Assembly (NCBI GenBank): GCA_020184695.1
Contig: JAANOX010000198.1
Coordinates: 62,001 to 126,000, forward strand
Source of the DNA: Histomonas meleagridis 2922-C6/04-290x
Lineage: Eukaryota > Protista > Parabasalia
Direction of reading: 5' to 3'
DNA length: 64,000 bases
Both the position numbers and the translations under genes were made by a program. The notes under the pieces are model-generated. The model saw nothing but the letters and a program-made list of their open reading frames with translations. It ran no database searches and had not been told where the DNA came from. Shown here piece after piece: positions 6,266 to 60,176 of this stretch (positions are counted from its first letter, which is position 1; each line of letters starts with the position of its first letter).

Positions 6266-8263
6266 ATGGAAAAACAGTTTGAATTCATGAACCTATCTCC
6301 TCTCCATATGTCCACTCTGTTACATCGGTACGATATGGTTATGGAGTTAAAGGAACATGTTGCTGCCACAGAAAAGACTTTTCAACATTATGCTGAATGT
6401 GGTCGACAATTATGCGAGTGTATGGAAAAACTTTCCGGCACATTCCAGCGTTACGATGAATTTAAATCCGATCCTGCATTACAAAGCATATCAGAATTAC
6501 TTATTTCATTTTCAAGTACCTTAAAGAGTCATTATGACCAAGTTGATCAACACATCATTACCTCTTTGAAGACTTTTATTAAAAAAGATATTGGCCGAGT
6601 TGAAGAAGACAATCGTCGAGTTTCACATTGCATTGATACATATAACAAACTTGTTGAACAGTTCGTTCAAATCAACAAGAAAAAGCCCGGTGCTGATCAA
6701 GAAGAGAAAGAAGCCCGTATGATGGCCTCACATTGGCAAGCTGTTTATTCCAGTTTCATGTTTAACCGTAGTCTCGACTATGTTGAACGAAAGAAGTTAC
6801 TAGAAATCACAGGAACCATGCTTATGTTTATTAATCTCGTTGCTTTGGCATATAAAGAATGTTTATTTAGTTTTGATGATGCCAAAGATTCTTTTTCAAA
6901 TCTTCAACTTGCACTTCCAGTTTCCTCTGATGAAGTCAACAACTTTGAAAAGAACACAGATATTCTTGGAAAATCACTCGAAGGATATTATACGTTATAT
7001 TGGAAGCGATTAAAAGTCTCATTTACACACACCCCTGCCATCAACCACGAAGGCTATTTATGGAAGAAAGGCAGTGGTTTTACCAAATCTTGGCAAAAGC
7101 GATATTTCATATGTCAAAATCATACATTATCATATTTCCATGGAACAGAAGACAGTGATAAGCCACAAGGTATCTTACCCCTGTTATTGACCACAGTTAA
7201 ACCTATTAAGGATCCAGAACGCCGATTTTGTTTCACGATCATATCGCAAGAAAAAGTCTATGTACTACAGGCGTTAACTGAATGGGACATGAACGAATGG
7301 ATCGCAGTCATCCAAAACAATATTCAATATCTGTTAGATCATAGTGGGGAAGATATCAAAGAAACTACTACATTTACGAAAGATTCTAGCAATGACTCAC
7401 CATTATCGGTCGAGTGTAATTGTGTTTGTGCAGATTGCGGTGCACCAAATCCAGTTTGGTGTTGCATCAATTGGGGAGTTTGCATCTGCATCAATTGTAG
7501 TGGAGTTCATCGATCATTGACCACATCAGTTTCTAAAGTTCGATCATTAACCTTAGATCGATTAGATCCCACCACCAATAAGTTATTTTTTTAGCGATTG
7601 GTAATTCTAATGCTAATTCCATATTAGAGAAGAACGTTGGGAGCGAGAAAATCAACCCTGGCGTTACTGAAAGGGAAACGAGAAGAGTATATGCGGAAGA
7701 AGTACTTGCAGATGTCATATTTTGCCAACAACGGCGTAAGCTATGACATGCACGAAGCGATAAGAGATGGTAACGTTCTCAAAGTTTACTCGTGCATTTG
7801 CGACATGAAAAAGCGTCAAATCAATCCGACCAACGGTTATACCCCATTACACGAAGCAGCCTCAGCCGGTAACCAGTTGATTACTTTGTTGTTGGCTTTG
7901 AATACAGATAACTTAAATGCTTTAGATGAAGAATGGTCAGCTTTGGCTTATGCAACTTATTATAATAATAATGATGCAGTCGAAGTGTTGTTACAATGCG
8001 GTTGTAATCCAAATGCTTCACATATTGTACACCCATATCAAATAGCAAAGGAAAATGGTAACCAGGCAATTATAGCAATGATGTTACCTTATTGGAATGA
8101 GAAAAATATGGAACAGCATGCTACAAACTTAAAGCCACCACATCCTTTGTCGTGGCAAGCAAGCAATGATACAAAGAATACCAAACTTGAAAGATATGCA
8201 ACAATTAATTTACTTGGAGCAATGGATTTCCAGTATTACGATCGAAAAAATGTTTTTTGTTAA
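6266..8263 (+). CDS. BAR-PH-ArfGAP-ankyrin protein (ACAP/centaurin-beta-like), with two compensating 1-nt frameshifts at ~7590 and ~7675
   Basis: PH (HEGYLWKKG...WQKRYF), ArfGAP zinc finger CADC-x16-CINC with HRSL...SKVRSLTLD, and ankyrin GYTPLHEAA. The intermediate frame reads LAIGNSNANSILE, bridging ORFs 6266-7594 and 7637-8263. Confidence 0.85.
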
Positions 8264-8340: not shown

Positions 8341-8767
8341 ATTGAAGAATTTTTCATTCAAAATCCCCAAAAGAAAACGCGAATAATTCATTGTCATTAT
8401 CCATTAGACTTATGGGATAAATACACATGTACATCTTCAACAGGTAAAACACTTGAACAAATTATAACGAATAATAATTGTTCAATGCTTATCACAGGTC
8501 ATACACATCCAAGTGAAACAACATTCATCCATACGAATGGAATGCTTGAAGTTGTTGCATCAGATCTTCTTAAACATAAAGGTTTTGGTATTATCACTAT
8601 TGATAATGGTCGAATTGTTTATCATTCATTAAAAATAGATGACGTTTTACAAAATGCTTTTGTGACTAATCCAATTCCTATTAATCAAGTAAGTACATTA
8701 TCGATATTTAATCAAAAGGACATTCGAATTCGAGTTATAGTTTATGATTCAAATCAAACATTAAATA
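8341..8767 (+). pseudogene. 427-bp inverted duplicate of an internal TMEM62-like segment (2966-3392)
   Basis: Near-identical sequence; ORF 8485-8808 repeats MLITGHTHPSETT...SNQTLN. Confidence 0.9.
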
Positions 8768-10261
8768 CTTTTAGCATCAATATCAATTCCTTTTTGTTCA
8801 AGAAGTAATTTGACTATTTCTATATGACCATTTTCAGATGCAATCATAAGTGCTGTTTGAAATAATTTAAATAATTTCCAAATATTATTTTGAAATAAAA
8901 AATTATTAAAATAAATTTCAAATAAAATAAATAAATATCTTTAGCATTAATATCAATTCCTTCTTGTTCAAGAAGTAATTTAAATATTTCTGTATGAACA
9001 TTTGAAGATGTAATCATAAGTGCTGTTTGAAATAATTTAAATAAATTCCAAATATTATTTTAAAATATAAAATCATTAAAATAAATATTAAATAAAACAA
9101 ATAAATATCTTTAGCATTAATATCAATTCCTTCTTGTTCAAGAAGTAATTTGACTATTTCTGTATGAACATTTGAAGATGTAATCATAAGTGCTGTTTGA
9201 AATAATTTAAATAAATTCCAAATATTATTTTGAAATAAAAAATTATTAAAATAAATTTCAAATAAAATAAATAAATATCTTTAGCATTAATATCAATTCC
9301 TTCTTGTTCAAGAAGTAATTTGACTATTTCTGTATGACCATTTTCAGATGCAATCATAAGTGCTGTTTCAAATATTTTAAATAATTTTCAAATATTATTT
9401 TGTAATTTCAAATTATTAATATAAATTTTATCTTTAGCATTAATATCAATTCCTTCTTGTTCAAGAAGTAATTTAAATATTTCTGTATGAACATTTGAAG
9501 ATGTAATCATAAGTGCTGTTTGAAATAATTTAAATAAATTCCAAATATTATTTTAAAAATATAAAAATCATTAAAATAAATATTAAATAAAACAAATAAA
9601 TATCTTTAGCATTAATATCAATTCCTTCTTGTTCAAGAAGTAATTTGACTATTTCTGTATGAACATTTGAAGATGTAATCATAAGTGCTGTTTGAAATAA
9701 TTTAAATAAATTCCAAATATTATTTTAAAATATAAAATCATTAAAATAAATATTAAATAAAACAAATAAATATCTTTAGCATTAATATCAATTCCTTCTT
9801 GTTCAAGAAGTAATTTGACTATTTCTATATGACCATTTTCAGATGCAATCATAAGTGCTGTTTGAAATAATTTAAATAAATTCCAAATATTATTTTAAAA
9901 TATAAAATCATTAAAATAAATTCTATATAAAACAAATAAATATCTTTAGCATTAATATCAATTCCTTCTTGTTCAAGAAGTAATTGAACTATTTCTGTAT
10001 GACCTACTTTAGATGCCCAAATAAGTGCTGTATAAAATAATTTAAATAATTTCCAAATATTATTTTGAAATCCAAATTTATTAAAATAAATTTTGAACAT
10101 AACGAATAAATGTCTTTAGCATTAATATCAATTCCTTCTTGTTCAAGAAGTAATTTAACGATTTCTATATTACCTTTTTTAGATTCAATCATAAGTGCTG
10201 TTTGAAATAATTTAAATAATTTCCAAATATTATTTTGAAATTAAAAATTTTTAAAATAAAT
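8767..10261 (-). repeat. 170-bp ankyrin unit array with (17+3)n spacers
   Basis: TAL codons at 10196, 10026, 9856, 9686, 9514, 9361, 9191, 9021, 8851; spacer lengths 60,80,80,80,82,63,80,80,80. Confidence 0.95.
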
Positions 10262-11440
10262 ATCTTTAGCATTAATATCAATTCCTTTTTGCTTTAAAAT
10301 GTATGTAACAAGTTCAATATTTCCTGAAAATGAAGCAAAAACTAAAATATTTCCTGGAAGTTGATTATTTTTATGGAAATATTTTACAAGAAAAATATTT
10401 CCAATTTTTGCTGCTTTATTAATGATATTTTTATTAATTTTCTTTCCTTCTTTTTCTAAATATGCAAAAATTTCATAATTAAAATATGAAACACATTTTT
10501 CTCCGAATTTTTTTAATTTGTTAATATCTTCAATTTTATTTTCATAAAGATATTTTAAAGATATCATTTCGTTGAAATTTAATTGCTGTTTCATATGCAC
10601 CTTCAAAAGATGAATGATTTTGTTCACATAAATGAATGATTTCTTCATTTCCACCTGCAATTGCATATTTACCTGTGTTTTCTACACTTGCATTATTCAT
10701 AAGTAAATATTTAAAACATTTAATTGATCCAAAGAATGCTGCATAATCAATTAATGTAACATTTTTATGATTAATAAATGAACATCTTTCATAAAGTGAT
10801 GGTTCAATTGTTTGATCAAAATTATAATTTGTTTGAGATGATATATCTTGAAGTTTTTCTATTTCATCATTTCGAATTATTTTTGCAATTTCTCTTGGAT
10901 TAACTCCTTCTTCAATTAATTGCTTATGAAGTTCAAAATCATTCTTTGAAAGTTCTTCATAAGCAATATTTTCTTGATCAAATAAATATTTATATTCATT
11001 TGATTTATCTTGATTAATATGAACAAAAAATGGATTAAATGTATTTTTGATGAATTTTGATTCAAGTAAATTATGCTTAATCATGTAATTAAGTAAATAA
11101 AATGATTCTTGTGTGTTTTCTTTAAGTAGAAATTGAGAAAATAAATTTATTATTTTTGAGCCGATTTTATTATTTTCTTCATATTTTTCAATTTCTTGTA
11201 ATAATCTCAAATATATATCAAAATTATTACTATCAATCAGAAGATATATATATATATCATTCGGAATATAATGATATCATAAGATAATGGATATTCTTAA
11301 CAAAACTTGCTGATAATAAAATTTGATGATTGAGCAAAATTATCTATATTCAAACCAAAGATTATGCTTTTGAGCGCTGTAAATGTTTCCCACTCCTTTT
11401 GAGATTTCTGATTTGATGTTGCTGATTGATTTTGATTCAT
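8767..11440 (-). pseudogene. DUF3447-ankyrin locus 1 (9 micro-exon-interrupted ANK repeats); N-terminus disrupted, 3' end truncated
   Basis: ATG at 11440 (MNQNQSA); TAA at 11297-11299; (AT)7 slip at ~11244-11257; +1 A at ~10555; DUF3447 core IIRNDEIEKL...IDYAAFFGSIKCFKYL...YAIAGGNEEIIHLCEQ. Confidence 0.8.
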
Positions 11441-14925: not shown

Positions 14926-15988
14926 ATTTATTCCTTCCTCTCTGAAAGTATGTTTTAATGTAAGTGAATGTTTATATGAACAAATTTTAGAACATATTAA
15001 ATGATGTGGATTCAAACATTTTCCTTATTTCAACTTGTTCAATTATAATTTTTTTAACACATAGAATTCAATGTTATGGATCCATAAAAACCTCTAAATT
15101 TTATTATATATTTAATGTTGTAGATTATATATAAAATAACATGGCAATTTCAATCCATAAAAAATATATAAATATTTATAATTTGTTAAACATGTTTAAT
15201 GGATAAATTGTTTCAAATATATTCTTGTTTTTGTTTCAAAGATTTGCAAAATAAATTCTTTATTATTTGAGTTCTTCGGCAATCGATTGTGTGCTTTACT
15301 CATACGAGATACTGTATAAATATGAAATTAATATATTTTATATTTTAAATAATTATTGAATACAATATGTTATATAAAAATATTATAATATAATAATTAT
15401 AGAATTATACATATTTATTAAAAAAAAATATTTTTCATATAAAATTTCATGAAATAATTATCTTCGTTTTACTTCATCTTTAAAAAAAAGATTTTCCATT
15501 GAATCTTCTGATGTAATATTACTTTCACTATTTTGTGATAACAACATACCTCCGCTTTGAATCGAATTTTGTGTGAAGGAATGAATGATATAAAGCGTGA
15601 AAAATTTGATTAAGCTACCTCTGATTTGGCAAGTTTGGACTCCTGGTGGAGAAAAAGAAATCCGGGTGATGTCTGCTTGATTCGTTTCATGTGCATCTAA
15701 GCCTGTTTCACTTGAAGAAGAAAATTATTTTGTTGAAGATTGTATTTTTGTCATAAACTATTGAAAATTGAATTCATATCTGGTCGAATTATCATTAAAA
15801 ATTATATCGTAAATCAAAACTAAAAACAATCGAAACGTTTGGCCAACACACAAGTTTAAATGTTTATATTAATGAAAATATTAGAAAAAATTGAAGATCT
15901 TTAGTTCTTCTTTTGTGATCTGGGAAACTTAATACACTTTTTCAATAAACTATTATTGACTTAAACCGCACATATCATCTGGAAGAAC

Positions 15989-18917
15989 ATGCGAAAACGC
16001 AAAACAAATATAAGTAAAAAAGAAAAAATATTTCCTCAAAACATAAAACTAGAATTATTCTCTAAGCTTGAACAAATAATAATGAATCTAACAGAAGAAA
16101 ATATAAATTTGTCAGCTAAACATACAATAAAATTATTTGATTTTAATTTACCATATTCATTTAATCTTGTTATAAATAATTTAATTTATTATGCATTTTT
16201 ATCACAAAGAAATAAGTGTACTACGTATTTTAAATTTTTAGAAATAATTCAAAAGAAAGAAGAGGAAAAAATTAATTCTAAATACAATATTATTGAAATA
16301 TTCCTTAATTATATCATAAAAAATAATTCTCAAGAAGCTCTATATCTAACTGAGCAAATGATTAGACAAAATTTAATTGATGCAAACATTACAAAGATAA
16401 TTCCTTCAAAATATTTTGCTCATTACAAAACTACAACTGAAAACAAAGAATGGTTATGTGGTGATCGATTTTGTTCAACTTTTGTAAAAAATTATGACCA
16501 ACTTTCAAAGAATGATTTTGAACTTCATAAAAAATATGTTAAAAAAGGACATAATCCGAATGAAATTGCAAAAATAATTCGAAATGATGAAATAGAAAAA
16601 CTTCAAGAAATAACATCGCAAAATGATTTTGACTTTAATCAAACAATTGAACCATCACTTTATGAAAGATGTTCATTTATTAATCAAGAAAATGTTACAT
16701 TAATTGATTATGCAGCATTTTTTTCTTCAGTTAAATGTTTTAAATATTTACTTATGAATGAAGCAAATGTAAATAATACAGGTAAATATGCAATTGCAGG
16801 TGGAAATGAAGAAATTGTTCATTTATGTGAACAAAATGGTTCATCATTTATAGGGTCTTATGAAATAGCAATTAAATCTCACCGAAATGATATTTTTCTT
16901 TATCTTTATGAAAATAAAATGGATAATTTGTGTGAGGAACATGATACAAAAACCTCATAAAAAAATTATCTGAAATATGAAGATTTCATAAAAATTTTGT
17001 GTTATGAGTGGAAATTATGAAATCCTATCATTTTTAGAAGGAGAAGGAACTAAAATCAATGAATCTATCATCAAAAAATCAGCAGAAATAGGTAATATAT
17101 ATCTACTCATGTATTTTCTTCATAATAACAAGAAAATACCAAAAAATATTTTAATTTATTCTATTAAATCAGAGAATGCTGAAGTTGTGGAATATATCAT
17201 TCTTAAACATAGAAAAGAAATCAATTTTAATTCTGTAAATATTTTTTGTAAAATTTCAATGCTTTCATACAATATTTGATAATGATTAATTAAGTTATTT
17301 AGAACTCCTTTGATATATGTTGCTGAAAAAGGTTACACAGAAATAGTTAAATTACTTATTAAACAAAAAGAAATTGATATTAATGCTAAAGATATTTATT
17401 TGTTTTATTTAAAATTTATTTTAATAATATAGTATTTCAAAATAATATTTGGAAATTATTTAAATTATTTGATACAGCACTTATTGAAGCATCATGGAAA
17501 GGTCATATAGAAATAGTTCAATTACTTCTTGAACAAAAAGGAATTGATATTAATGCTAAAGATATTTATTTGTTTTATTTAAAATTTATTTTAATAATAT
17601 AGTATTTCAAAATAATATTTGGAAATTATTTAAATTATTTGATACAGCACTTATTGAAGCATCATGGAAAGGTCATATAGAAATAGTTCAATTACTTCTT
17701 GAACAAAAAGGAATTGATATTAATGCTAAAGATATTTATTTGTTTTATTTGAGATTTATTTAAATTATTTTATATTTCGAAATAATATTTGGAAATTATT
17801 CAAATTATTTAGAACAGCACTTATTTTGGCATCTTATTATGGTCATACAGAAATAGTTAAATTACTTCTTGAGCAAAAAGGAATTGATATTAATTCCAAA
17901 GATATTTTATTCCTTTACCTAAAATTTATTTTAATGATATAATATTTCAAAATAATTTTTGGAAATTACACAAAATATTTAAAACAGCACTTATTTTTGC
18001 ATCTAGAGATGGTAATTTAAATATAGTTAAATTACTTTTGGAACATAAAAGAATTGCTTTAAATGTTATAGATGATTTTTATTTATTATAATCGATATTA
18101 TTTAGAGTTACTTTGGGTTTTAAGCCAAAATTTAAAGTTTTATTATATAATTTGAAACACCATTAATTTGGGCCTCAAAAAATGGTCATAAAGAAATTGT
18201 TAAAATACTTCTCGAAAAAGAAGGAACTAATATTAATGCCAAAAATTTTTGAATGTTTTGTTCAAGGTTTAAATTAATTAAAATGGATTTCTTAATAATG
18301 TTTGGAAAATATTCATATTGTTTCAAACAGCACTTATAAAGGCATCTTCAAGTGGATACACTGAAATAGCCAAATTACTTTTAGGAAAAGAAGGAATTGA
18401 TGTTAATGCTAAAGATATTATTTTCATATTTTGTTTAGAATTTATTTATACAATTGGATGTGCTAAATGTGTATTTAGGATTTGTTTAAAATACTTGAAA
18501 CAGCAATTGTGTTTGCTGCTAAAAATGGTCACACAGAAATCGTTAAATTACTTCTTGAACAAAAAGGAATTGAAATTAATGCTAAAGATGAATTTTTGTT
18601 GTTTTATATGATATTTATTATAATAATTTGATATATTAAGATAATATTTGGAATTTACTTAAAATATTTTGTACAGCACTCATGAAAGCATCGAGAAATG
18701 GTCATGCTGAAATAGTTAAATTACTTCTTGGACAAAAAGGAATTGATATTCAAGCTAAAACTATTTATTAAATTTATTTAAAATTCAAATAAACGATATA
18801 ATATTTCAAAATAATATTTGGAAATTATTTAAATTATTTGAAACAGCACTCGATTTAGCATCTTCAAAAGATAACCAAAAAATTGTTAAGTTATTTATTA
18901 AAAAAAATTATAATTAA
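15989..18917 (+). CDS. DUF3447-ankyrin locus 2 (10 micro-exon-interrupted ANK repeats); homopolymer frameshifts at ~16950-17000
   Basis: DUF3447 core in ORF 15989-16960; ANK blocks at 17304-18843; terminal repeat ends IKKNYN* at 18917. Confidence 0.75.
17241..18917 (+). repeat. Ankyrin unit array with (17+3)n spacers
   Basis: TAL/TPL at 17304, 17474, 17644, 17814, 17984, 18157, 18327, 18500, 18673, 18843; spacers 63,80,80,80,80,83,80,83,83,80. Confidence 0.95.
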
Positions 18918-18954
18918 TAAAAAAATTATTGAATAAAATTATGTGGATCACCAC

Positions 18955-19052
18955 ATTAAACCGATAGAATTTTTTGAGATGAGCGTTTAATGCATTCAAA
19001 AAGTTGAGAATACCGTTTATCCAGAGCCAATTCAAAAAATTCTATCGTTTAA
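18955..19052. repeat. Short inverted repeat (16-bp perfect core) flanking ~55 bp
   Basis: cgatagaattttttga at 18962 and tcaaaaaattctatcg at ~19032. Confidence 0.6.
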
Positions 19053-20143
19053 CGGTCGTCTGCCTGGAAATCATTTATCCACTTAATAAAGACACTGTCA
19101 ACCAACTCTCCCTCTTATGGATTTCTTATTAATTTTAAAATTATTTGTAATGTATTTAATACATATCAGATTTTAACATATACAAATTTTTATGAAAATA
19201 TAATAATTTTTTTAAAATTTCCTTTGAATTTAGTCACTTTCCATTTAAATTCGTGTACGATACAATACACAAACGGTCATCTAAGCGAAGACTGGATGTA
19301 TCAATTAACCACATCTAAACCAGTATATACAAGAATTGTTGAAAAAATGTTTACAATATTTTTATCTTCTGTTTGATTTTGTGATTCCTGTTGTGAGTAT
19401 CGCTCACTCGTGGAGGAACGGATCTTGATGGATTTGTAACCGAAAATCGATTCAAAAAGTTATTTTTTCTTCTTTGACCAGAGTATCCAATAATGAATAA
19501 ATTGTTTCAAGAATTATCCTATTCATAGAACAAATAAATTATATAAAATTGCAAAGACAGATTTTTGAATTTTTGCTCTGATCTATAGATATTGAAAATC
19601 TTGTATAACTTAAAAACAGAATGAAAACTCTAGAAAAATTATATAAATTAATATTGATTATCATTAGTTCTATATATTTATTGAAGTTAAACTTTTGTAT
19701 TTAATCCTAAAGCCCAAAAAAGCATTTTGAAATTTTGGATATTGCTCATAAAAAATAATACAACAAAATTTGGTTAAGATAATTTTATTGAATAGAATGT
19801 GTATACTAATTTATTTATATTTTTTTTAAAATTTAGTACAGTGGAAAATGAAAAAAATTGATTTTCTGATTTGAAAAGACCGTTTATTTGGTCGACTTAT
19901 TTAATACAACAGACTTATTCATTTGATGTTTGTCTCAACATTTAATACCGCTTATTTCTTTAAACAATTTCAATTTATTAATTTGGCGCAATAATTTGTA
20001 CACCAACATCAGCAAGAACAATTTTTGTGTCATTTCCAGTTAAACTCATTAAGGAATTTGAAGATAATTTTCTGAGTTTTACAAAGTATACTTTCACATG
20101 AATTCAAATTTTCTCTACTAACCGTTTATTATTATTTTTAACA

Positions 20144-23100
20144 TTGGGAGGAAATATTTCACACGAAAAAGTACAAACCAAAAGAATTGTTAAAACGGAA
20201 TTCACTATAGAAGTATTACAGCAAATCGAAAAGCTTATTTTTGAAGTGAATGAAAATAATATTTCAAAAACAGTTGAATCAATATTAGTATTCGAAAATA
20301 ATAAGTTTCCTTTTTCATTTAAACTTTTAATATGTCAAATTATATATGTATATTATATATCAGGAAATTATAATATTAACATAATTTGTGAATTTTTAAG
20401 ACAATTTCAAATCAAAGAAGAAGAAAATAAAGAAACAAAAAATAAAATTATAAATATTTTTGAATATTTTCTAATTTGTACTAAAACACAAGAATCTTAT
20501 CATATTCTTTATAAATTACATGAAAATAAGTTAATTAAAGAAAAAATGACTGTAATTCAAAACTCATTATATTTTCTTCAATGCATTCCAAAAGAAGAAA
20601 TATGTAAAACAAAATCCAAATTTCAAAATGAAATTTTAAATAATTATGAAAAACTTTCACAAAATGATTTTAAGCTTCATAAGCAATTCATTGAAGAAGG
20701 ACATAATCCAAATGAAATTGCAAAAATAATTCGAAATGATGAAATAGAAAAACTTCAAGAAATAACATCACAAAGTGATTTTAACATTAATCAAAAAATC
20801 GAACCATCACTTTATGAAAGATGTTCATTTATTAATGAAGAAGTTTCATTAATTTATTATGCAGCATTTTTTTCAGCAGTCAAATGTTTTAAATATTTAC
20901 TTATAAATGGTGCTAAAACAAATTATATAGGCAAATATGCAATTGCAGGTGGAAATGAAGAAATCATTCATTTATGTGAACAAAATCATTCATCATTTAA
21001 AGGCTCGTATGAAATATCAATAAAATTTCACAAAAATGATATATTTTTTTATCTTTATGAAAACAAAAGTGAAAAAATTCATAATTTGGAAGACTTAGGA
21101 AGGTTTTGCATTCTATATCATAACTATGAAATTTTTCTATTTTTGATAAAAAATGGAATGAATATCATTAAATTTTTAATCAATACTTCATTGGAAACAG
21201 GAAATATATTCATTTTACAATATTTCCTGAAAATAAATCCATTTACATTAAATATTTGCGATATTTCATCCATTTATAATAATAAAGAACTTTTTAATTA
21301 CTTAATTGCTGAAAATATTTTTGATATTAATAAGGAAACTATATATTTCTTTCATTTAATGTTTATGTAAATGATTTGTTATATCAGAATATTATTTGAA
21401 AATTCTTTAAATTTTTTGGAACAGCATTAATGTTTGCAATAGAAAATGGTAAGAATGAATTATTTAAATTACTACTTAAACAAAAAGGGATTGATATTAA
21501 TGCTAAAGATATTTATTTGTTTTATTTAAAATTTATTTTAATAATATAGTATTTCAAAATAATATTTGGAAATTATTTAAATTATTTGATACAGCACTTA
21601 TTGAAGCATCATGGAAAGGTCATATAGAAATAGTTCAATTACTTCTTGAACAAAAAGGAATTGATATTAATGCTAAAGATATTTATTTGTTTTATTTAAA
21701 ATTTATTTTAATAATATAGTATTTCAAAATAATATTTGGAAATTATTCAAAATATTTAGAACAGCACTTATTTATGCATCTAAATATGGTCATACAGAAA
21801 TCGTTAGGTTACTTCTTGAACAAAAAGGAATTGACATTAATGCTAAAGGTGTTTATTTGTTTTATTTATAATTTATTTTAATAATTTTATATTTCAAAAT
21901 AATATTTGGAAATTATTTAAATTACTTCATACAGCACTTATGTATGCATCTGAAGAAGGTAGTACAGAAATAGTTAAATTACTTCTTGAACAAAAAGGAA
22001 TTGACATTAATGCTAAAAATATTTATATGTTTTAATTTAATATTCGTTTTGATAATTTTGTGTTTCAAAATAATATTTGGAAATTATTTAAATTATTTGA
22101 TACAGCACTTATTGAAGCATCATGGAGGGGTCATATAGAAATAGTTAAATTACTTCTTGAACAAAAAGGAATTGATATTAATGCTAAAGATATTTATTTG
22201 TTTTATTTATTTTATTTTTAATCGTTATAATATTTTGATAGAATATGTGAAAATTATATAAATTTTTTGAAACAGCACTTATGTTTGCATCTGGAAAAGG
22301 TCATATAGAAATAGTTAAATTACTTCTTGAACAAGAAGGAATTGATATTAATACTGTTAATATTTATTCTTTTCCTTTCATATTTATTTGAATAATTTTG
22401 GATTTCAAAGTTTGATTCAATAAATGCTTAAAATATTTGAAACAGCATTAACACTTGCATCTTGTAATGGTCACACAGATGTAATCGTAATGCTTCTTAA
22501 ACAAAAAGGAATTGCTGTTAATACCAAAAATATTTTTTTTATTTTATATAACATTAATTTTAATTATTATATATTTTAAAATAATATTTGGAAATTATTT
22601 AAATTATTCAGAACAGCACTTATGTTTGCATCTGGAAAAGGTCATACAGAAATAGTTAAATTACTTCTTGAACAAGAAGGAATTGATATTAATGTGAAAA
22701 ATGTCTAATTAAAATGTAAAATATTTCAAATATAGTTTTGAAATAACATCAAAAAATATGGAAATTAAATTAAATTATTAAAACAGCACTCATATGTGCA
22801 ACAGAAGAAGGATATATCGAAATAGTAAAAAATCTTCTAGAACAAAAAGGAATTGATATTAATTCACAAGATATTATATTAAATAATAACGAATCTCAAA
22901 AAAAATTTTAATGATATCATAATATATTACATATTTAAATTAAATTAATAAATCATCACTTATATTGGCATCAGAAAAAGGTTATTTCGAAATAGTTCAA
23001 ATACTACTTCAACAAAAAAGGATTAATATTAATATAAAAGATGTTTCAATTGATTAATTAATATTTCAATTAACAATTTTGTGATTTAAAAGAAAATTTG

Positions 23101-23550
23101 GAAAGTATTTTCAATATATTTTACTCCACTTATGTGGGCATCTATTAATGGACATAAAAAAATAGTTCAAATATTACTTAAACAAAAAAGTATTGATATT
23201 AATGCCAAAAATTTATGCTTTTTATTATATAATATTTATATGAATCTTTTTATATTTCCAAATTATTTTTGGAGTTTCTTTAAATATTTGAAAACAGCTC
23301 TTATAAAAGCAATTGAAAATGAACATGTTAAAGTCATAAAATTACTATTAAAAAATGATAATATTGATATGAATATTCATGATGTTAAAATGATTTAAAT
23401 GATTTTCATATTAAATATTTAAAATTTTAAGATAATTTTTGGAATTTATTAAAATTAAAAGAAACGGCTCTTATGCATGCAACTAAAAAAGGAAACACAG
23501 AAATTGTCAAATTACTAACAAAATATAAACGAAAAAAGAGTAAAAAATAA
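20144..23550 (+). CDS. DUF3447-ankyrin locus 3 (13 micro-exon-interrupted ANK repeats)
   Basis: Open 20144-21340 with the DUF3447 core; ANK blocks 21421-23464 are all stop-free; terminal repeat ends KYKRKKSKK* at 23550. The start reads acaTTGgga (probably ATG with a 1-nt insertion). Confidence 0.8.
21341..23550 (+). repeat. Ankyrin unit array with (17+3)4 spacers
   Basis: Unit starts 21421, 21591, 21761, 21931, 22102, 22272, 22442, 22613, 22783, 22953, 23123, 23294, 23464; ten 80-nt and three 81-nt spacers despite strong divergence. Confidence 0.95.
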
Positions 23551-24377
23551 TATATTTTATATATAAAAATGTCTTTATATAAAAATTTTGTATTTAAATA
23601 GATCCGACTTTATTTCAAAATGTTTAACAACTGATAATAATGTTTTTGAACGATTAGAAAATCATTTAACAATTAAAAATTCAACTAATGGGAATCAATA
23701 AAATGAAAGAGCTTTTGTTCGGGAATTTCGAACATAAATTAGGCACTAACTACATCAAGATTAACTAACATGATTGGACGAAAAATTACTTCAATACATC
23801 ATACAAAATTAGGTACCAAGTAAAATTCTTTTCAATCTTTTCTTTATGTTGTTTGTGAATTTGATTTATCAAGGAATTGATTCGTTATTCCTTATAAGGA
23901 GTCTAATTTATATGCTATTAATTGAAATACACTTGGAACAATATAAATAATTTCGAATTTTTAAAAAAAACCTATAAGAAAGAAAATTGATTGCCAAACC
24001 GAAATTTCGTTGTTATTAGTCCTAAAAATTGAAGAATTGAAATGATTCATTTTACCACATGAAACCAAATGAACATTGCGACTGGGAAACACATCTATCA
24101 ATAAATCAAGCAGTTTTTAGTTTGAATGAAGAAAATTTAAATATTTAGGTTTAATAATCAGCAGTAAAATATCTTCTAATTAAAGAAACAATTTGGCATT
24201 CTTTTTTGGCAATGTTATAAGCAATTAAAGGATTTTATTCTCACAATGTTGAAAGAATTAAATTTCTGAAAAAAATGTTTCTTCATGAAGAAAAAAAATT
24301 TTATAAAAGTCCCAATCAAAAGCATAGAAAATTGTATAAAATTCGAAAATTGATGAATTATATTTAATAAACTTGAG

Positions 24378-35395: not shown

Positions 35396-36880
35396 TTATT
35401 TAATCCATTGATCATCATCTTCATCCATAATTTCTGCGATACCATTGGTAGTCTCATTAACTTCGCTTATTTGATCTGATGGACATTGTTCTTTATTTGA
35501 TAATGAATGTGTTTCATAATGTTTTTTGTGCTTAATGACAAAATATGTAAATCCTATAATCAGTAAAACAACTGCAAATGATCCACATATTATTCCAATT
35601 AATACTTTAATAGGAAGCGATTCGTTTTGTTGGGGGTTGATTTTAATCATTGTATAAAAATTAGAATAAAAATGATAAAGTGAAGAATAATAAATAATTG
35701 TATATTCATATGAAATAATATACGTTGGATAATAATAATATTGAGAGTTATTTAATGAAATTGTTATAGTACTTATGTATTTTGCAAAAAAAGAAATATG
35801 TTCAGTAACTGAAAACGAATTTATCAAAACAAAAGAATGTGTAATTGTCATGTCATTTGATAGCGAAGCAGTAAATGTGTTTGACTTAGTAAAAGTATTA
35901 CTTTGGATAAATGAATTTGATCTTGAAAATGTATTTGATTTTGAAAATGTTTTAGAAAATGTATTTGAATATGAAAATGTTTGTGTTGGCCAAGGAAGAC
36001 ATTCATCAATTGTTATTCCTTTGGAAACATTTAAACCGCCAAAAGTTTCATTTGAATATGTTTCCTTTGTCATCACTGATTTAGCTGCAATTCCAACAAA
36101 AGTATTTCACCATAAAAATAAATACATTTAAGAGAGAAACATGATGAAAATGCATCAGAGCCAATTGAATCAACATTTTCTCCAATAAAAATTGTTTCAA
36201 CCGAAATACAATTTCGAAATGAATATTGTTCAATATAAGTAATTGAATTTGGAATATGAAATGTTTTTGTTGAATTTCCAATTGGATAAAGAATTAGTTT
36301 TGTAATATTTTTATTGTATAAAACGCCATCATTTTCATAATTAGAAAAATATAAATTTTCTTCTGAAACTTTAATAAATTGAAGACTTCTGCAATTTTCA
36401 AATGAACTTGATGACATTGAAGAAACAGAACTTGGAATATATATGTTTTTCAAATTTATACAATCTGAGAAAGCACTTTGTCCAATAGAAGTTAATGATT
36501 TTGGAAATGTGATTTGAGTCATTTGGCATTTATAAAACGCTTGTAAACCTATTTCTGTTAAATTTGCTCCAAATTCGACTGTTTCCAATTTAGAACAATT
36601 ACAAAATGACATCATTCCAATTGTTTTTACTGAATCACCAATTTGTACATATGATAATAAAGGCCATAAGTAGAAAGCAAAATCACCAACTTCTTCAACG
36701 CCATTAATTACAACATGCTCAGTAACATCCTTATAATCACATGTAAATTCACTTGGTTGAGTTATATTAAGTGTTTTTGTTGAATTATTAAATGTTTGCG
36801 ACGTATTAATGAAAAATATAAAAATTAAAAATGAAATAATATGTTTATCTTTGCTATAGGTATATTTAATAAAATAATTT
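35396..36880 (-). pseudogene. BspA-like (LRR_5) surface protein with S/T stalk and TM, frameshifted at ~36090
   Basis: SLTSIGQSAFSDCINLKNIYIPSSV repeats; CIYFYG then a shifted frame TFVGIAAKSVMTKETYSNETFGG; FSxSN stalk; TM VLIGIICGSFAVV. True start uncertain. Confidence 0.75.
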
Positions 36881-37441
36881 CCTGCTAAACTATTAAAAGT
36901 AAAGAAAATAATTACAAAATCATATGAAACGATGGTTAAAAATATTATCACTTTGGAAGAAAAAATATTTGAAACTGCTATTGAAAAAGAATGTAAGAAT
37001 CCATTAGCTTTTGGATTATGAAACTTGTGTAAATTATCTGATAAAAATGCATTAAAAAATAATAATTTTTCCAAAAAATTGATATTATGATAATACTTTA
37101 CTGTTTTAATGTGTTCTATGTGTTTTTCTGTTGATTGTATAATAGATATAATATTAATATGATGAATTCCTTTTATGCTTTGAAGATTAGTTCCTTTTTT
37201 GTCCATAATTAAATGAATGTCATGTAACAGATGTTGAACTATACCTACGAACATCGTTACTATCAACAATTGAAGATACTTAGAGTATATCATGCTTTTT
37301 TTTTCTTTATGACTTTCTTGAATTAACCCAATTTGTTCTGAATTTTTCTGTTGTTATCCTAGGATTTAACGCAGTTATTCACAAATATTTGTGAGAATGC
37401 CGATTATTTTCAATGTAAATTTTGTGCAAACGATCTTGGCA

Positions 37442-44625: not shown

Positions 44626-45441
44626 TATTTTGCTCATTATCAACCAAAAGAAGAAAACCAAAACCATTTTTCATTTGGGTCTAATAGAAATGATCCAAAA
44701 GAAAAATACTTTTTGGAAAATTATGAAGAACTTTCAAAGAATGATTGGGAGCTTCATAAGAAATATATTAAAGAAGGAGTTAATCCAAATGAAACTGCGA
44801 AAATCATTCGAAATGATGAAATAGAAAAACTTCAAGAAATATCATCACAAATAAAATTTGATTTTAACCAAACAATCGAACCATCATTTTATGAAAGATG
44901 TTCATATATTAATGCAGAAAATGTATCTTTAATTGATTATGCAGCATTCTTTGGATCAATTAAATGTTTTAAATATTTACTTGTAAATAATGCAAATGTA
45001 GAAAACACAGGTAAATATGCAATTGCAGGTGGAAATGAAGAAATCATTCATTTATGTGAACAAAATCATTCATCATTTGAAGGTGCATATAAAACAGCAA
45101 TTGAATTTCATCAAAATGATATCTTTAAATATCTTTATGAAAATAAATTAGAAAAAATACAACCAAAGTCAAAAATTTCTAAAGTCACACATTATTTGGT
45201 AGATTTTTGTATTCAAAAAGATAATTATGAAATTTTAGCATTTTTGGCAGAAAAAGGAATTAATATTAATGCTTGTAATATAAATGAATCAGCAAGAAAT
45301 GGAAATTTATATCTCGTTAAAAATTTCCTTCAAAATAATCAAATTCCAAAAATTATTTTGCCATTTGCTTCAGAATCAGAAAATGTTGAACTCGTGAATT
45401 ATGTTTTAGAACAAAAAGGAATTGATATTAATGCAAAAAAT

Positions 45442-46478
45442 ATTCATTTGAATAACTTGGAATATGTTTTAATTTTTTGAAATATGTTTTAATAATTTGC
45501 AACAGCACTTCATATAGCAGTTAGAAATAATAATATAGAAATAGTAAAATTACTTTTAGATAAAGAAGGAATTGATGTTAATGCAAAATATATTCATTTG
45601 AATAATTTGGAATATGTTTTAATAATTTTATATATGTTTTAATAATTTAAAATCTGTATTAATAATTTGAAACAGCACTTCATATAGCAGTTAGAAATAA
45701 TAATATAGAAATAGTAAAATTACTTTTAGATAAAGGAATTGATGTTAATGCAAAATATATTCATTTGAATACCTTGGAATATGTTTTAATAATTTGGAAT
45801 ATGTTTTAATAATTTGGAATATGTTTTAATAACTTGGAATATGTTTTAATAATTTGGAATATGTTTTAATAATTTGAAACAGCACTTCATATAGCAGTTA
45901 GAAATAATAATATAGAAATAGTAAAATTACTTTTAGATAAAGGAATTGATGTTAATGAAAAAGATATTCATTTGAATAATTTAGAATATGTTTTAATAAT
46001 TTTATATATGTTTTAATAATTTATAATATGTTTTAATAATTTGGAATATGTTTTAATAATTTGCAACAGCACTTCATATAGCAGTTAGAAATAATAATAT
46101 AGAAATAGTAAAATTACTTTTAGATAAAGGAATTGATGTTAATGCAAAATATATTCATTTGAATAATTTGGAATATGTTTTAATAATTTTATATATGTTT
46201 TAATAATTTAAAATCTGTATTAATAATTTGAAACAGCACTTCATATAGCAGTTAGAAATAATAATATAGAAATAGTAAAATTACTTTTAGATAAAGGAAT
46301 TGATGTTAATGCAAAATATATTCATTTGAATAACATGGAATATGTTTTGATAATTTGATATATGTTTTAATGATTTGAAACAGTACTTCAAATTGCACAA
46401 CAATTAGGTTACACAGAAATAGTAAATTTACTCCTTGAAAAAAGTACAAACGAAAATTCTAATTGTCTTTTTCAATAA
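45442..46478 (+). repeat. Ankyrin array whose spacers are 3-6 copies of a near-constant 17-mer plus a variable triplet
   Basis: atatgttttaataattt + NNN; spacer lengths 60,80,120,100,80,60. Confidence 0.95.
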
Positions 46479-46559
46479 ACATCAAATCTTCACTTTCAAT
46501 AAGAAATGGAAATGAAGCATATATTGCTTAGTAAATTCTTTACTAAAATAAAGATGAAT

Positions 46560-54340: not shown

Positions 54341-57300
54341 TTATTCGTCAAATATTATTCCTTCTTGTTGTTTAAGTAAATTAATTATTTCAGGATTTCT
54401 TGTCAACATAATTGCAATTTCATATTATAAAAATTAACACCAAATTAATCGAACGAATATCGTAACATTAAAACAAAAGTCAAAAGGGATAAACAATTAT
54501 TATCGATATTCAAACAGATATCTTTTTGCTTTATAAGTAATTTTACTATTTCGATATTATTATATTGACAAGCGAACATTAAAGGTGTCCAAAATAATAA
54601 AAATAAATTCCAATAAATTTATAAAAACTGAAAATATTTCTAATAAATTTCATTTTGCGCATTAACATTTGCACCTTTTTCAAGAAGTATTTTAACAACT
54701 TCTGTTTGCGCTTGACTTAAATCACCATAAAATGAGTCACGATTCAACGCCGCGTTCTTAGCAGCAATTTTGGCCATTTTAATTAATTGTTTCTCAAATA
54801 AAATAAACAAATACTCAATAATGAAACCAAACCAAAAGCATTATAAATAAATTCCAAATATATTATATTAATATGATTCGTATTTAGATCAACTCCTTGA
54901 CTTTTCATGATCTTATGGATGAAATTAGGTCCCATTTCAGTAACTTTTTTACATATTAACATTAATGCTGTATAAAATACATTAAATAAATTCCAAATAA
55001 CATTTTGAAATTTGAAATGATTTGAATTTATTTTGTTTGCTGCATTTACATCAATATCTTCTTTCGTTAAAAGTAATTTTACTATTTCAATGTTTTGATT
55101 TTCACATCCATATATTAAAGCTGTATAAAATAATTTCAGTAAACTTGATATTTTCATATTAAATGTCAAATCATTATAGTAAATACGTAATAAATTTAAG
55201 AAATATTACATATATTAACATCAATATTATCTTGTTCAAGTAATAATTTAACGATATTAACAAAATCTTTTTGTGATGCATAAATTAACGGAGTATTAAA
55301 TTTTTATTATAAATACCAAAACATTTAAAAAAACTAAAAATTTAATAAAATTAACACAAAATTATATTAACAAATATTTTGGACATTACAATCTACATTT
55401 TGATGCTCGAGTATTAATTTCATAACTACCATTTTGTGCAGCAACAATTAAAACTGTTTCAATTAATATATGAAAACTCCGAATATTATGATTAAATACT
55501 TTATAAATTAAATAAATATCAAAAATTTTGGGTTTACATTTCGAATATTAACATCAATATCTTTTTGTTCAAGAAGTATTTTAGCTACATCAAAACTATT
55601 CTTAGCCGAAGCTTCCATTAAAGCAGTCCAAAACAAATTAAATAAATCCCAAATTTCAAGTTTATACATAAAAAGATTCAAATTAATATCAATATATTAT
55701 AACAAATACTTCTTGAATTAATATCGATTCCTTCTTTTGATAAAAGTAATTTTACTATTTCGATGTTATTATTTGTTGATGCTTTCATTAAAGCTGTCCA
55801 AAGATTCCCATAAAAACACCAAATTTATTATATTATACATTATATTATTCAAATTAACTTCAAATTGTGTATCAAAACGTTTTTCATATTAACATCAATT
55901 TTTTCATTATTCAAAAGTAATTTAACAATTTCATTGTTATTATTCTCAATAGAATACATTAAAGAAGTCCAACATAACAAAAACAATTTTCAAATTATAT
56001 TATAAAAATTTAAATATGCATATAATATATTATCATAAGAATTAACATTTATGTTTTCTTGGTCAAGAAGAAGTTTTAATATGTTAATGTTTTTATTTTT
56101 TGTTGCAATTATTAAAGCTGTTTCAAATATATTTAATCAATTCCAAATAATAAATTTAAACTAAAAATTATCAAGTTAATCATTAAGTTAATATTAAAGT
56201 AATATTTTGTGCATTAATATCAATGCTTTTATGCTCAAGAAATAGTTTAACAACATCAAAACTATTATTTTTTACTGCTATTAAAAGAGGAGTTGCAAAT
56301 AAAATGAACAAATTCCAAAAATTTTACTTAAACGTCAAATAAAATTTATAATTTTTTCTTATATTCATATCAATGTTCTTATTTTCTAAAAGCATTTTAA
56401 TAATTTCATTTTGATTATTCATACAAGCAAACAATAAAGCCGAATAAAATTATTTTAATAAACTCCATATAATTAATAAAAACATTAAATCATTCGAAGT
56501 TACAACTTTAGCATTAATATCAATTTCTTCTTTTTCAAGGAATAATTTAACAATTTCTTTATGACCTTCAATAATTGCTATCATTAAAGCAGTATAAAAA
56601 CATTGAAATAAACACCAAATTATAATATCAAATTTTATGTTAATATTAAAAATATTTTTAGCATTAATATCAATATCTTTTTGTTGAAGAAGTAATTTTA
56701 CTACTTCAATGTTATTCTTCATAACAGCAAACATTAATGGTGTGAAAAATATTTTGAATAAATACCAAAAAACTTGTTAAAACAGAAAATTATTAAAATT
56801 AATATAAAATAAATCAAATAAAGATCTCTCTTATTAACATCATCTCCTTTTTCAAGAAGTAATTTAACAATTTCGACATAACCATTTTGATTTGAATTTG
56901 GAACTAATAATTTAATAAATTTAAATGAATTTTTTTATCAGATGTTTTATAAATTTTATCTTCAATGAAACCAGTATTAATTGGTGTACCTTTAGCACAT
57001 GCATAAATAAGTGCTGTAAAAAGAAAACTTAATAAATTCCAAAAATTATATTTGGTCACAAAAACATTAAAAGAAACTAAAAATATTATAATACAACATC
57101 AACTGTTTTAATATCAATTTCTTTCTCAAGAAATGATTTTATTATATTAATATTACCACGAGTGCATGCAATAAGGAACGCTGTTAGGAATAATTAAAAT
57201 ATGTTCCAAATATTAATTTGATATATCAAATATATAAAATTTACACAAATAAAAATAAATAAACGTTTTTTATATGTACATTAATTCCTTCTTGTTCAAG

Positions 57301-58283
57301 AAGTAATTTAACTATTTCTGTACAACCATTAAAAGATGCATTCATAAGTGCTGTTTCAAATAATTTAAATAATTTCCAAATATTATTTTGAAATACTAAA
57401 TTATTAATATAAATTTTAAACAAAACAAATAAATATCTTTAGCATTGGTATCAATTCCTTCTTGTTCAAGAAGTAATTTAACTATTTCTGTATGACCATT
57501 TGAAGATGCTAATGTAAGTGCTGTATCAAATAATTTAAATAATTTCCAAACATTATTTTGAAATAGAAAATTATTAAAATAAATATTAAATAAAACAAAT
57601 AAATATCTTTAGCATTAATATCAATTCCTTCTTGTTCAAGAAGTAATGAAACTATTTCTGTATGACCTTTCCAAGATGCCCAAATAAGTGCCGAAAAAAT
57701 AATTTAAATAATTTCCAAATATTATTTTGAAATAGAAAATTATTAAAATAAATATAAAATAAAACAAATAAATATCTTTAGCATTAATATCAATTCCTTT
57801 TTGTTCAAGAAGTAATTTAACGATTTCTATATGACCGTAATTAGATGCAAAAATAAGTGCTGTTTGAAATAATTAAAATAATTTTCGAATATTATTTTGA
57901 AATATTAAATTATTAAAATAAATATCAAATAAAACAAATAAATATCTTTAGCATTAATATCAATTCCTTCTTGTTCAAGAAGTAATTTAACGATTTCTAT
58001 ATGACCGTAATTAGATGCAAAAATAAGTGCTGTATAAAATAATTTAAATAATTTCCAAATATTATTTTGAAATATCAAATTATTAAAATAAATTTTAAAT
58101 AAAATAAATAAATATCTTTAGCATTAATATCAATTCCTTCTTGTTCAAGAAGTAATTTAACTATTTCTGTATGACCTTTTTGAGATGCTCTCATAAGTGC
58201 TGTCCAAAATAATTTAAATAATTTCCAAATATTATTTTGAAATATCAAATTATTAAAATAAATATTAAATAAAACAAACAAAT
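54341..58283 (-). repeat. Long ankyrin unit array with (17+3)n spacers
   Basis: Periods 170,170,169,170,170,170,167, then 150,150,150,172,153,171,170,170,163,170,153. Confidence 0.9.
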
Positions 58284-59621
58284 ATCTTTAACATTAATAT
58301 CAATTCCTTTTTGTTCTAAAGCAAATTGAACACTTTCTATATTACCCGATTGTGAAAAATTGACTAAAAGATTTTTTGGAAATTGATGATTTCGTAGTAA
58401 ATATTTAACTAATAATAAGTTTCCTTCTTTTGATGAATTTTTTATAATAGAATCATCCATATGTATTCCTTCTTCTTCATTGAAAAATGAAAAAATTTCA
58501 TAGTTTCCACTACTTATACAAGTTTCGCATAATATTTTCAGCTTTTCTGCTCTTATCTCATCAGGAGACTTCATATTCTTTTGTATATTCATTGGTTGAT
58601 TCATAAAATTACCAAATAACCCAAAAACAGGCAACTTATTTCCAAACATTGAAAATTGATTTGTTGGAACTTGTTTCGGTTCTTCTTGATCAAGTTTTTC
58701 GATTTTATTATTATAAATATATTTAAAGATATCATTTTTGTGGAATTTTATTGCTGTTTCACATGCGCCATCAAATGAACAATTGTTTTGTTCGCACATT
58801 TTAATTATTTCAATGTTTCCACTTGCAACGGCATATTTCCCGACGTTTGTAGTTTTAGCTCCATTCAAAAGCAAATATTTGAAGCATTTTATTGATCCAA
58901 AAAATGCTGCATAATCAATTAATGAAACATTTATTTGATTAATGAATGAACATCTTTCATAAAGTGATGGATCAATTGTTTGGTTAAAATCAAAATTTGG
59001 ATGTGATGATATTTCTTGAAGTTTTTCTATTTCGTCATTTCGAATTATCTTTGTAATTTCATTCGGATTATGTCCTTCTTCAATTAATTTCTTATGAAGT
59101 TCCCAATCATTTGCTTTAAGTTTTTCAATATTTGCATCGAATATTTTTTCGATCTTCGTAAGCGTAGGATCTCTGTTGAATACAGTTGATTTTATTTTGT
59201 TACGATGTATAAAATAAGATGAGCATATGGATTTAGATTTATTTTCGTCAATTATCCCTTTGCTAATCATTTTCTCAACTAAATAAAGTTGTTCTTGTGT
59301 ATAAGGAGACTTGTAAATTAAATAGTTAGAAAATATTTTTAAGATTTTAGCTTTATCATTATCTTTGTTTATTTGCTCTTCTTTTGATTGGAGTGATTCT
59401 AAATATTTGAAATATATGTCACTAACACATTTGGTTGAAACAAATGAAGAATAAACTAATATAGATATGGCAACATTATATGAATAGATAAAATCGGGTT
59501 CAATAAGTTTCATTGTTTCTTCAACTGAAGCATTAAGATTTTCTTCATTTAATTTAAATATGATTTGAGTGATTGCAATTAGCTTTTGCATCTCAGTGGA
59601 TTGATTGTTAGCTCCTTCCAT
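54341..59621 (-). CDS. DUF3447-ankyrin locus 6 (~23 micro-exon-interrupted ANK repeats; distal half highly diverged with local lesions)
   Basis: Uninterrupted N-terminal ORF with the DUF3447 core; terminal repeat ends KQQEGIIFDE* at 54341; lesions at ~56850-56990 and ~55400. Confidence 0.75.
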
Positions 59622-60176
59622 GAACAAAAAGTAAAACTAACCGACCAAGGCACCACTTTTCTATAGAAATATTCTGTTGCTTTTGTATGGAGAACTCCTT
59701 TGTGTTGTGCTATCGTTTCTAAAACAGTTCATTTGTTGATTCACACCTTGCATTGAAATATTTCAAAAATATTGTTTAAACAAACGAATTCATACAAAAA
59801 AGCATAAAAACCGTTATTTTCAGAGCATCGTTTACTATCATTGGAATTCCAATGATTCATTCAATTCTATTGCAATTTGCAACATGATAAAAATCAAAAT
59901 AGTGAAACACCATAGATCAAGATTGCATGTGAGTCAATATAACAACGGATTTCAAACTTCAAAATTCAATTTCTTCAGTATAAAATAGTTTAAGAATTGA
60001 TAGGAAATATAATAAATTTTTTTAATCATGTTACTGCAATATAATCGCAAGCTAAAAGATAGATAATTTTAATTTGTAATTTTGTTTATTGAACTTCATC
60101 ACCAAAGAACTAAGAAGTAAATACTATGCTTCTACATTAATATATTGATGAAAAAAGAAAAATTTAAAAAAAATTA

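Follow-up and report, generated by a model that had tools for sequence, protein, structure and literature searches.

Why should four consecutive residues of a protein loop be written as isolated triplets, each parted from the next by exactly 17 nucleotides (nt)? The question is raised by an ankyrin-repeat gene (gene A, 15989-18917, forward strand) of the poultry parasite Histomonas meleagridis, which lies in a 64,000-nt stretch (the window) of contig JAANOX010000198.1 from the attenuated-strain assembly GCA_020184695.1. The H. meleagridis genome, 43 Mb with 28.7% GC, was assembled from Oxford Nanopore (ONT) and Illumina reads and carries gene models made by AUGUSTUS; the paper that describes it calls introns 'scarce' and leaves 17-nt inserts unmentioned (PMC8529796). 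We propose that in the DUF3447-ankyrin family of this organism each repeat would be encoded as a 90-nt block, while the beta-hairpin loop, D-x-x-G-x-T, would have its four residues (in some cases 3 to 6) written as single codons. The 17-nt inserts between these codons are AT-rich, T-rich on the sense strand and share the consensus RTTT-N9-ATTT. Each 17-mer would be an autonomous, phase-0 intervening sequence of fixed length that leaves the transcript before translation.

Read directly, 17391-17473 is GAT followed by four copies of a 17-mer plus three nucleotides, with ACA GCA CTT next. On its upstream side stands a 30-codon ankyrin block whose translation ends in ...INAKD (17304-17393; 39.3 bits with a hidden Markov model (HMM) of the block). 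Then come, all on the forward strand, 17-mer 1, ATTTATTTGTTTTATTT (17394-17410), and codon AAA (Lys, 17411-17413), the first loop position, variable across units; 17-mer 2 (17414-17430) and AGT (Ser, 17431-17433), loop position 2; 17-mer 3 (17434-17450) and GGA (Gly, 17451-17453), the conserved hairpin glycine; and 17-mer 4 (17454-17470) and GAT (Asp, 17471-17473), loop position 4, which adjoins the Thr of the next 30-codon block, TALIEASWKGHIEIVQLLLEQKGIDINAKD (17474-17563). The DNA repeats every 170 nt, of which 90 are coding and the other 80 are spacer. Because the block at 17474-17563 matches only positions 4-32 of the 33 in Pfam Ank (PF00023, E = 8e-8), four residues of the repeat are missing, and the triplets K-S-G-D fill this gap with Gly at profile position 2. 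Together AAA AGT GGA GAT complete an ankyrin hairpin, D-K-S-G-D-T, and the repeat carries both signatures of the class, the 33-residue profile T-P-L-H...G-H...LL...GA-D-N and the D-x-x-G-x-T hairpin. Gene A consists of a DUF3447 N-terminal domain and 10 such blocks. For comparison we used a second assembly, from the virulent strain, in which sequences L006 and L007 span window 1-35800; in that version of gene A, taking out 36 17-mers yields a 10-repeat array that stays open up to its natural stop.

Does this arrangement extend beyond one gene? A search of the window with the block HMM returned five genes and two fragments, 61 blocks in all. Of the 51 spacers that separate adjacent blocks, 39 have a length divisible by 20 nt (60, 80, 100 or 120), and five more measure k x 20 - 17 (63 or 83 nt), the first 17-mer being absent, which brings the regular total to 44. 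These regular spacers contain 172 17-mers. The other seven deviate by 1-2 nt. Two irregularities disappear in the virulent-strain assembly: the 82-nt spacer at 9520-9601 in gene E has two surplus bases and is 80 nt there, and the first element at 22021, 18 nt in the window, is there a canonical 17-mer. Judged from this comparison, both off-size spacers, exactly 80 nt in the virulent assembly, are probably homopolymer errors; since they are regular in the other assembly, the 17-nt length is stricter than the window alone suggests. Loops hold anywhere from 0 to 6 units, and the arrays finish at natural stops after 10 to 20 repeats.

Are the triplets codons? None of the 139 is a stop, against 12.5 expected from the composition of the 17-mers, and the adjacent register 16, one base earlier, contains 40 stops in 108. 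The third triplet from the 5' side encodes Gly in 29 of the 36 regular spacers, taken unfiltered, with GGA, GGT and GGG all in use and exceptions mostly GAA. Mean entropy is 1.32 bits for triplets 1, 2 and 4 but 0.69 at the positions of the 17-mers (p = 1.5e-5, Mann-Whitney), and in entropy the triplet register ranks first of the 20 registers. Between units these triplets differ with a p-distance of 0.54, compared with 0.28 for the 17-mers and 0.21 for the blocks, whose synonymous distance (pS) is 0.28; the equality of the 17-mer distance with block pS indicates that the 17-mers drift at about the synonymous rate, their ends and length excepted. The triplets outpace that rate, as expected of the x-x-G-x residues exposed on the hairpins of ankyrin repeats, which are the positions randomised in designed ankyrin binders. 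The blocks themselves, 41 distinct ones with a mean of 15.6 differences from their consensus, show no stop and no indel. About 19 of 41 simulated neutral blocks would be expected to carry a stop, and never fewer than 10 did so in 500 runs; hence the arrays are selected to stay open. In their evolution the triplets and blocks behave like coding sequence, the 17-mers like spacers of constrained length whose ends are conserved.

What, then, does the protein contain? Candidate products were compared by phmmer, over 29 junctions, with 21 relatives that have uninterrupted arrays. Against these references, chosen for canonical G-x-T loops, the product that keeps the triplets and drops the 17-mers (the 17+3 product) has the highest mean domain score, 38.8 bits, and wins 19 to 29 of the 29 junctions. 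Removing the whole spacer gives 28.5 bits, keeping 3+6 nt 32.4, keeping the last 12 nt 34.8 and keeping the first 12 nt 35.5, while triplets taken from other registers give 34.1-37.5. From these comparisons it is very probable that the protein excludes the 17-mers and includes the triplets. Could each spacer instead be one large non-canonical intron, its 60-80 nt (or 68-71 nt of them) removed at once and the triplets never expressed? Whole or near-whole removal is stop-free in 54 of 54 spacers, the final 6 nt of 17-mer 4 translate to L-F in the frame of the following block, and a change of 20-nt copy number inside an intron would leave the frame intact. Such an intron would, however, leave unexplained the variation in three-base islands 20 nt apart, the freedom of all 139 triplets from stops, the Gly codon and spacer lengths that step by 20 or 17. 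Its products, with the whole spacer out or 3+6 nt kept, match the uninterrupted relatives worse than the 17+3 product does in 29 of 29 junctions, and its termini would not be GT-AG either. We consider it unlikely.

Could the ribosome simply read through the spacer, with one or several programmed -1 frameshifts? In young units the downstream frame is open over the entire spacer, a single shift opens a path in 20 of the 31 distinct 80-nt spacers, and 60-nt spacers are readable in frame, as in the metagenome protein P0023. The other 11 of the 31 have no open single-shift path, whereas the 17+3 product is stop-free in 31 of 31; there is no constant slippery site, as the triplets vary; and the product would bear a 27-residue hydrophobic insert in every hairpin. 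We would give frameshifting only the faintest chance of being correct.

How might the 17-mers be recognized? Their ends were tabulated from 99 distinct 17-mers in 36 regular spacers. The first dinucleotide is AT in 59, GT in 20, AA in 12, TT in 3, GC in 2, GA in 2 and AC in 1; the last is TT in 72, AT in 12, TC in 6, AA in 4, CT in 2, TA in 2 and GT in 1, with neither AG nor AC in any. TTT makes up the last three bases in 63. A purine occupies position 1 in 97%, T fills positions 2-4 in 83-87% and positions 15-17 in 81-88%, and A is found at positions 10-11 in 62-71% and at position 14 in 75%, from which the consensus given above follows. The initial annotation had described mostly AT or GT starts, TTT ends, an A-rich centre and no terminal AG, and all of these descriptions hold in the larger sample. 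It had also reported the absence of the parabasalid branch and 3' motif, ACTAACACACAG; this motif has no match in the whole window, even with one mismatch allowed. On the sense strand the 17-mers are 55% T, 36% A and 10% G+C, for genes on both strands alike, a bias that points to recognition as RNA.

Does any known machinery fit such segments? With GT starts in 20 and AG ends in none, the 17-mers lack the GT-AG borders of U2-type introns. Only 16 of 54 spacers admit a single GT-AG intron at some other place that restores the frame, and these lack a common position (at most three share one). For U12-type AT-AC introns, the 59 AT starts are not matched by a single AC end, and the 5' consensus is RTTT, not ATATCC. 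Relaxed AT/GC-AG/AC introns find their sole matches on conserved coding bases. With termini, motif and single-intron tests all negative, the earlier view that these ends indicate no known removal machinery is borne out. Structure is no more informative: RNAalifold returns 0 pairs over 31 aligned spacers, and the spacer at 17391-17473 has a minimum free energy of -8.5 kcal/mol against a shuffle mean of -11.6 (z = +1.1, worse than shuffles). This lack of a fold excludes euglenozoan end-pairing and bulge-helix-bulge sites. Endonucleolytic splicing of the tRNA or IRE1 type was rejected, there being neither bulge-helix-bulge sites nor paired stem-loops, and no Rfam family occurs in the window.

Might the inserts be removed from DNA in expressing cells, in the manner of the internal eliminated sequences (IESs) of ciliates? 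The IESs of Paramecium are 26 bp and longer, bounded by TA, found in any phase and precisely removed from the DNA of the somatic nucleus. Like them, the 17-mers are short AT-rich inserts that interrupt coding sequence, and some boundaries do have T|A on both sides, as in GAT|A...T|AAA at 17393/17394 and 17410/17411. Unlike them, the 17-mers are inconsistently bounded by TA and always in phase 0, in an organism without nuclear dimorphism; 17-mers 2 and 4 follow codons ending in A, and T|A boundaries arise only where the neighbouring codons permit. A ciliate-type IES was rejected as a candidate on these boundaries. Both independent strain assemblies retain all inserts, and over about 28 kb of comparison between them there is not one 17-nt indel. 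The strand-specific T bias indicates RNA instead, and we know of no germline/soma split in parabasalids. DNA-level excision, which the initial annotation had listed among its candidates, thus finds no support, and we regard it as highly improbable.

Another candidate on that list was serial ribosomal bypassing, in which the ribosome would read a codon, hop 17 nt and read the next. Known bypass elements, which are found in organelles or phages, span 27-55 nt; they require take-off and landing codons that match, in most cases together with a structure or a stop after take-off, and they occur in series in yeast mitochondria (the byps of Magnusiomyces). As in phage T4 gene 60 and in Magnusiomyces, where there are many per genome, the 17-mers are short non-coding inserts within open reading frames (ORFs), and bypassing would let the mRNA retain its spacers, in keeping with the undepleted RNA words described below. 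The features that define these elements are nevertheless missing. Take-off codon and landing triplet are identical in only 2 of 139 cases; most of the 17-mers open with ATT, GTT or AAT, so that no stop follows take-off; there is no stable or conserved fold; and the 36 to 80 hops required per protein would demand near-perfect efficiency. Bypassing is, in our estimation, very unlikely.

Is anything removed at all? If not, the downstream arrays would not be translated as ankyrin repeats, and the products would be N-terminal ORFs that stop in the first spacer. Public models do end in the first spacer (P0009, P0001-P0007), or else the genes are unannotated, and the ankyrin proteins in a transcriptome-based proteome table, two entries only, are about 35-55 kDa, the size of the N-terminal ORF. 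The word share of the array in RNA runs is, moreover, not below that of the whole region. Here the word share is the fraction of sampled 31-mers held by the contigs of a run, and the RNA runs date from 2023. For the 7.7-kb region 15900-23600 the share is 0.22-0.29 in RNA runs and 0.47-0.60 in DNA runs; for the array at 17304-18932, in which only 37.5% of 31-mers lie wholly inside blocks, it is 0.28-0.32 and 0.50-0.65. Supposing that every word could turn up in an RNA run, the array share in RNA fits a fully processed mRNA. Array divided by whole region gives 1.1-1.2, a value in keeping with unprocessed RNA and equally well with a processed gene A together with a weakly expressed gene B. What a lack of removal does not account for is the absence of stops (about 19 expected) and of indels from 41 downstream blocks with a mean of 15.6 differences, the freedom of the triplets from stops, the natural stops after 10 to 20 repeats and the conserved length of the 17-mers. 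We judge it quite unlikely that nothing is removed.

Several observations nonetheless weigh against excision of each 17-mer from RNA. A depletion of spacers in RNA runs is not visible, the RNA/DNA ratio being about 0.48 for the array and the whole region alike; this value fits full processing of gene A with weak expression of gene B just as well as an even, partial coverage of unprocessed sequence. At a practical ceiling of about 0.65, as for the source DNA, some spacer words must sit in RNA-run contigs, where they could originate from pre-mRNA, DNA carry-over or unprocessed mRNA. When protein libraries were searched with the N-terminal ORFs, every model recovered was derived from DNA and stopped in the first spacer; a processed form was not among them. 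In JGI contigs a profile of the N-terminal domain had no matches, and a scan for spacer-free junctions found one unrelated ankyrin gene (L008) with ordinary uninterrupted repeats and no uninterrupted form of the family. Five off-size spacers, two in gene B (22532 and 23213) and three in gene D (55798, 56122 and 57695), remain unaccounted for, and the ratio of nonsynonymous to synonymous differences (pN/pS) in the blocks is only 0.73. Finally, we are aware of no precedent for 3-nt exons between 17-nt introns, nor, to our knowledge, does any known spliceosome use A/G...T termini.

What favours removal as RNA? The 63-nt spacer at 9367-9429 in gene E has lost exactly its first 17-mer and retained both flanking codons. 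Slippage would be expected to delete 20 nt; this very product is what recombination with a processed cDNA would leave. A strand-specific U-rich signal, units that behave autonomously and precise loss together argue for removal of RNA measured by length and end motifs. Recognition would proceed through length and short end motifs, not through GT-AG borders, a branch-site motif or a fold; arrays would grow by duplication of a 20-nt unit of one codon and one 17-mer, and single 17-mers could be lost precisely, as introns are. Among the candidates listed by the initial annotation, which also included guide-directed RNA deletion, ruler-type removal from RNA is the most plausible. An endonuclease-ligase pathway, or a spliceosome used in a very divergent manner, may be responsible. 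From the sequence evidence, we hold the prospects of RNA-level removal of each 17-mer in this way to be evenly balanced. A shade short of even, in our view, is the broader proposal of a new class: 17-nt RTTT...ATTT inserts that would be removed from nuclear pre-mRNA by a ruler-like, non-GT-AG activity and could be stacked between codons, so that 20-nt duplications would add loop residues one at a time in a large, fast-evolving ankyrin family.

How do the other members of the family compare? Gene B (20144-23550, forward strand) has 13 blocks and 40 17-mers in regular spacers; its 81-nt spacers at 22532-22612 and 23213-23293 are off-size and identical in both assemblies. Gene C (44713-46480, forward strand, its end approximate) uses a distinct, nearly constant 17-mer, ATATGTTTTAATAATTT, with variable triplets and 3 to 6 units per loop. 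In the loop at 45762-45878 six 20-nt units that are almost identical, with GGA as the triplet in five, read G-G-G-G-G-E, which looks like a recent tandem expansion that would give the loop a run of Gly. Gene D (54445-59627, reverse strand) has 20 blocks, in which young units and old, diverged ones keep the same 17+3 register. Gene E (8761-11210, reverse strand) has 10 blocks and includes the 63-nt and 82-nt spacers discussed above. In the non-ankyrin genes of the window, isolated motif-bearing 17-mers joining long ORFs were looked for and none were found; the apparent frameshifts in a BAR-PH-ArfGAP gene and a BspA-type gene sit at T runs, and the former alone was compared with the other assembly.

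The same grammar is found outside the window. A second H. meleagridis locus (L003) reads D-[17]-E-[17]-Y-[17]-G-[17]-N-T-P, and two contigs from short-read metagenomes have the loops H-D-G-S (L001) and N-Y-G-G-E (L002). Its presence at another locus of the species and on short-read contigs means that the 17+3 grammar is not an assembly artefact. The related gene on L001 also has one 12-nt junction without any insert. On a metagenome contig from ENA (L009), the gene at 692-2056 has a three-unit 60-nt spacer that is open in frame, and the called protein, P0023, reads through it; 60-nt spacers do not force removal. In three metagenome runs from chicken gut, about 5% of the words sampled from the array at 17304-18932 are present, which fits those birds having carried Histomonas or a close relative.

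Two further features deserve mention. The first junction of gene A (17235-17303, 69 nt) departs from the usual 17-mer motif and can alternatively be read with a 60-nt GT...AG intron (GTAAAT...TTAAG) to give N-S-L-F-R-T-P; both readings are stop-free. Within the ankyrin blocks of all the genes (e.g. 17474-17563) variation clusters at codons 4-5 and 8-9 (T-A-L-x-x-A-S-x-x-G-H), which are other ankyrin surface positions, a pattern that fits a diversifying binding family.

Is there a known system that the 17-mers resemble? Ultra-short introns measure 15-16 nt in Stentor, 18-21 nt in the Bigelowiella nucleomorph and 23-25 nt for type B of Trichomonas vaginalis, and a survey of Trichomonas introns gives a lineage minimum of 23 nt, all of them GT-AG (PMC12316389). 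Like these spliceosomal introns, the 17-mers are tiny, narrowly sized, T-rich and located in nuclear protein-coding genes; 24% of them start with GT, and their A-rich centre lies 7-8 nt from the 3' end, the site of the branch A in Trichomonas. Unlike them, the 17-mers never end in AG, mostly start with AT or AA and lack an ACTAAC-type motif, and where known tiny introns have ordinary exon flanks the 17-mers run in series separated by single codons. The non-conventional introns of euglenids and diplonemids are nuclear and also lack GT-AG borders, their ends base-pair and their machinery is not known (PMC12621601). They are, however, far longer and variable in length, whereas the 17-mers have a fixed length and show no pairing of ends across the 31 aligned spacers. 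A single codon as an exon recalls the 3-nt microexons of animals and plants, but in those cases the flanking GT-AG introns are long and dedicated exon-definition factors are required, in contrast to flanking inserts of 17 nt here. A search of the literature on short and non-canonical introns, microexons, parabasalids and Histomonas found no published description of the pattern.

The two strain assemblies also bear on how this region has been annotated. They are 99.9% identical across aligned stretches; what differs is almost always a small indel, in most cases within a homopolymer run. At 7580-7600 the BAR-PH-ArfGAP gene is broken by a T7 run that is T5 in the virulent assembly, where the protein is an intact 648 amino acids (P0289); the longer run probably reflects a homopolymer error in the assembly of the attenuated strain and not a strain difference reported in the genome paper. 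A BspA-type leucine-rich repeat gene on the reverse strand is parted at a T run (36060-36130) into two ORFs (36073-37293 and 35396-36076), probably another homopolymer error. In A runs of its N-terminal domain (16940-17080), gene A is interrupted by a frameshift and an in-frame TAA; in the virulent assembly the TAA is gone and one base too many persists, in an A5 run near 16990, where the surplus base could be a genuine lesion or an assembly error that was left over. In the public records examined, genes A and B (15989-23550; L007) have no gene model, and annotated family members of the P0009 type terminate within their first spacer. With models absent or ending there, the ankyrin family is under-represented in H. 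meleagridis protein databases.

What would these inserts mean for the organism? If removal from RNA is true, the 17-mers would be among the shortest intervening sequences known, the first nuclear ones of fixed length with neither GT-AG nor AT-AC ends, and their loops would provide the first runs of one-codon exons. Their removal would imply either an RNA-processing enzyme not yet known or that a divergent spliceosome can do more than has been suspected, and the question is approachable with existing RNA sequencing and proteome data. As the published H. meleagridis annotation truncates or omits the family, a large, diversifying family of putative binding proteins is missing from the proteome databases of this pathogen.

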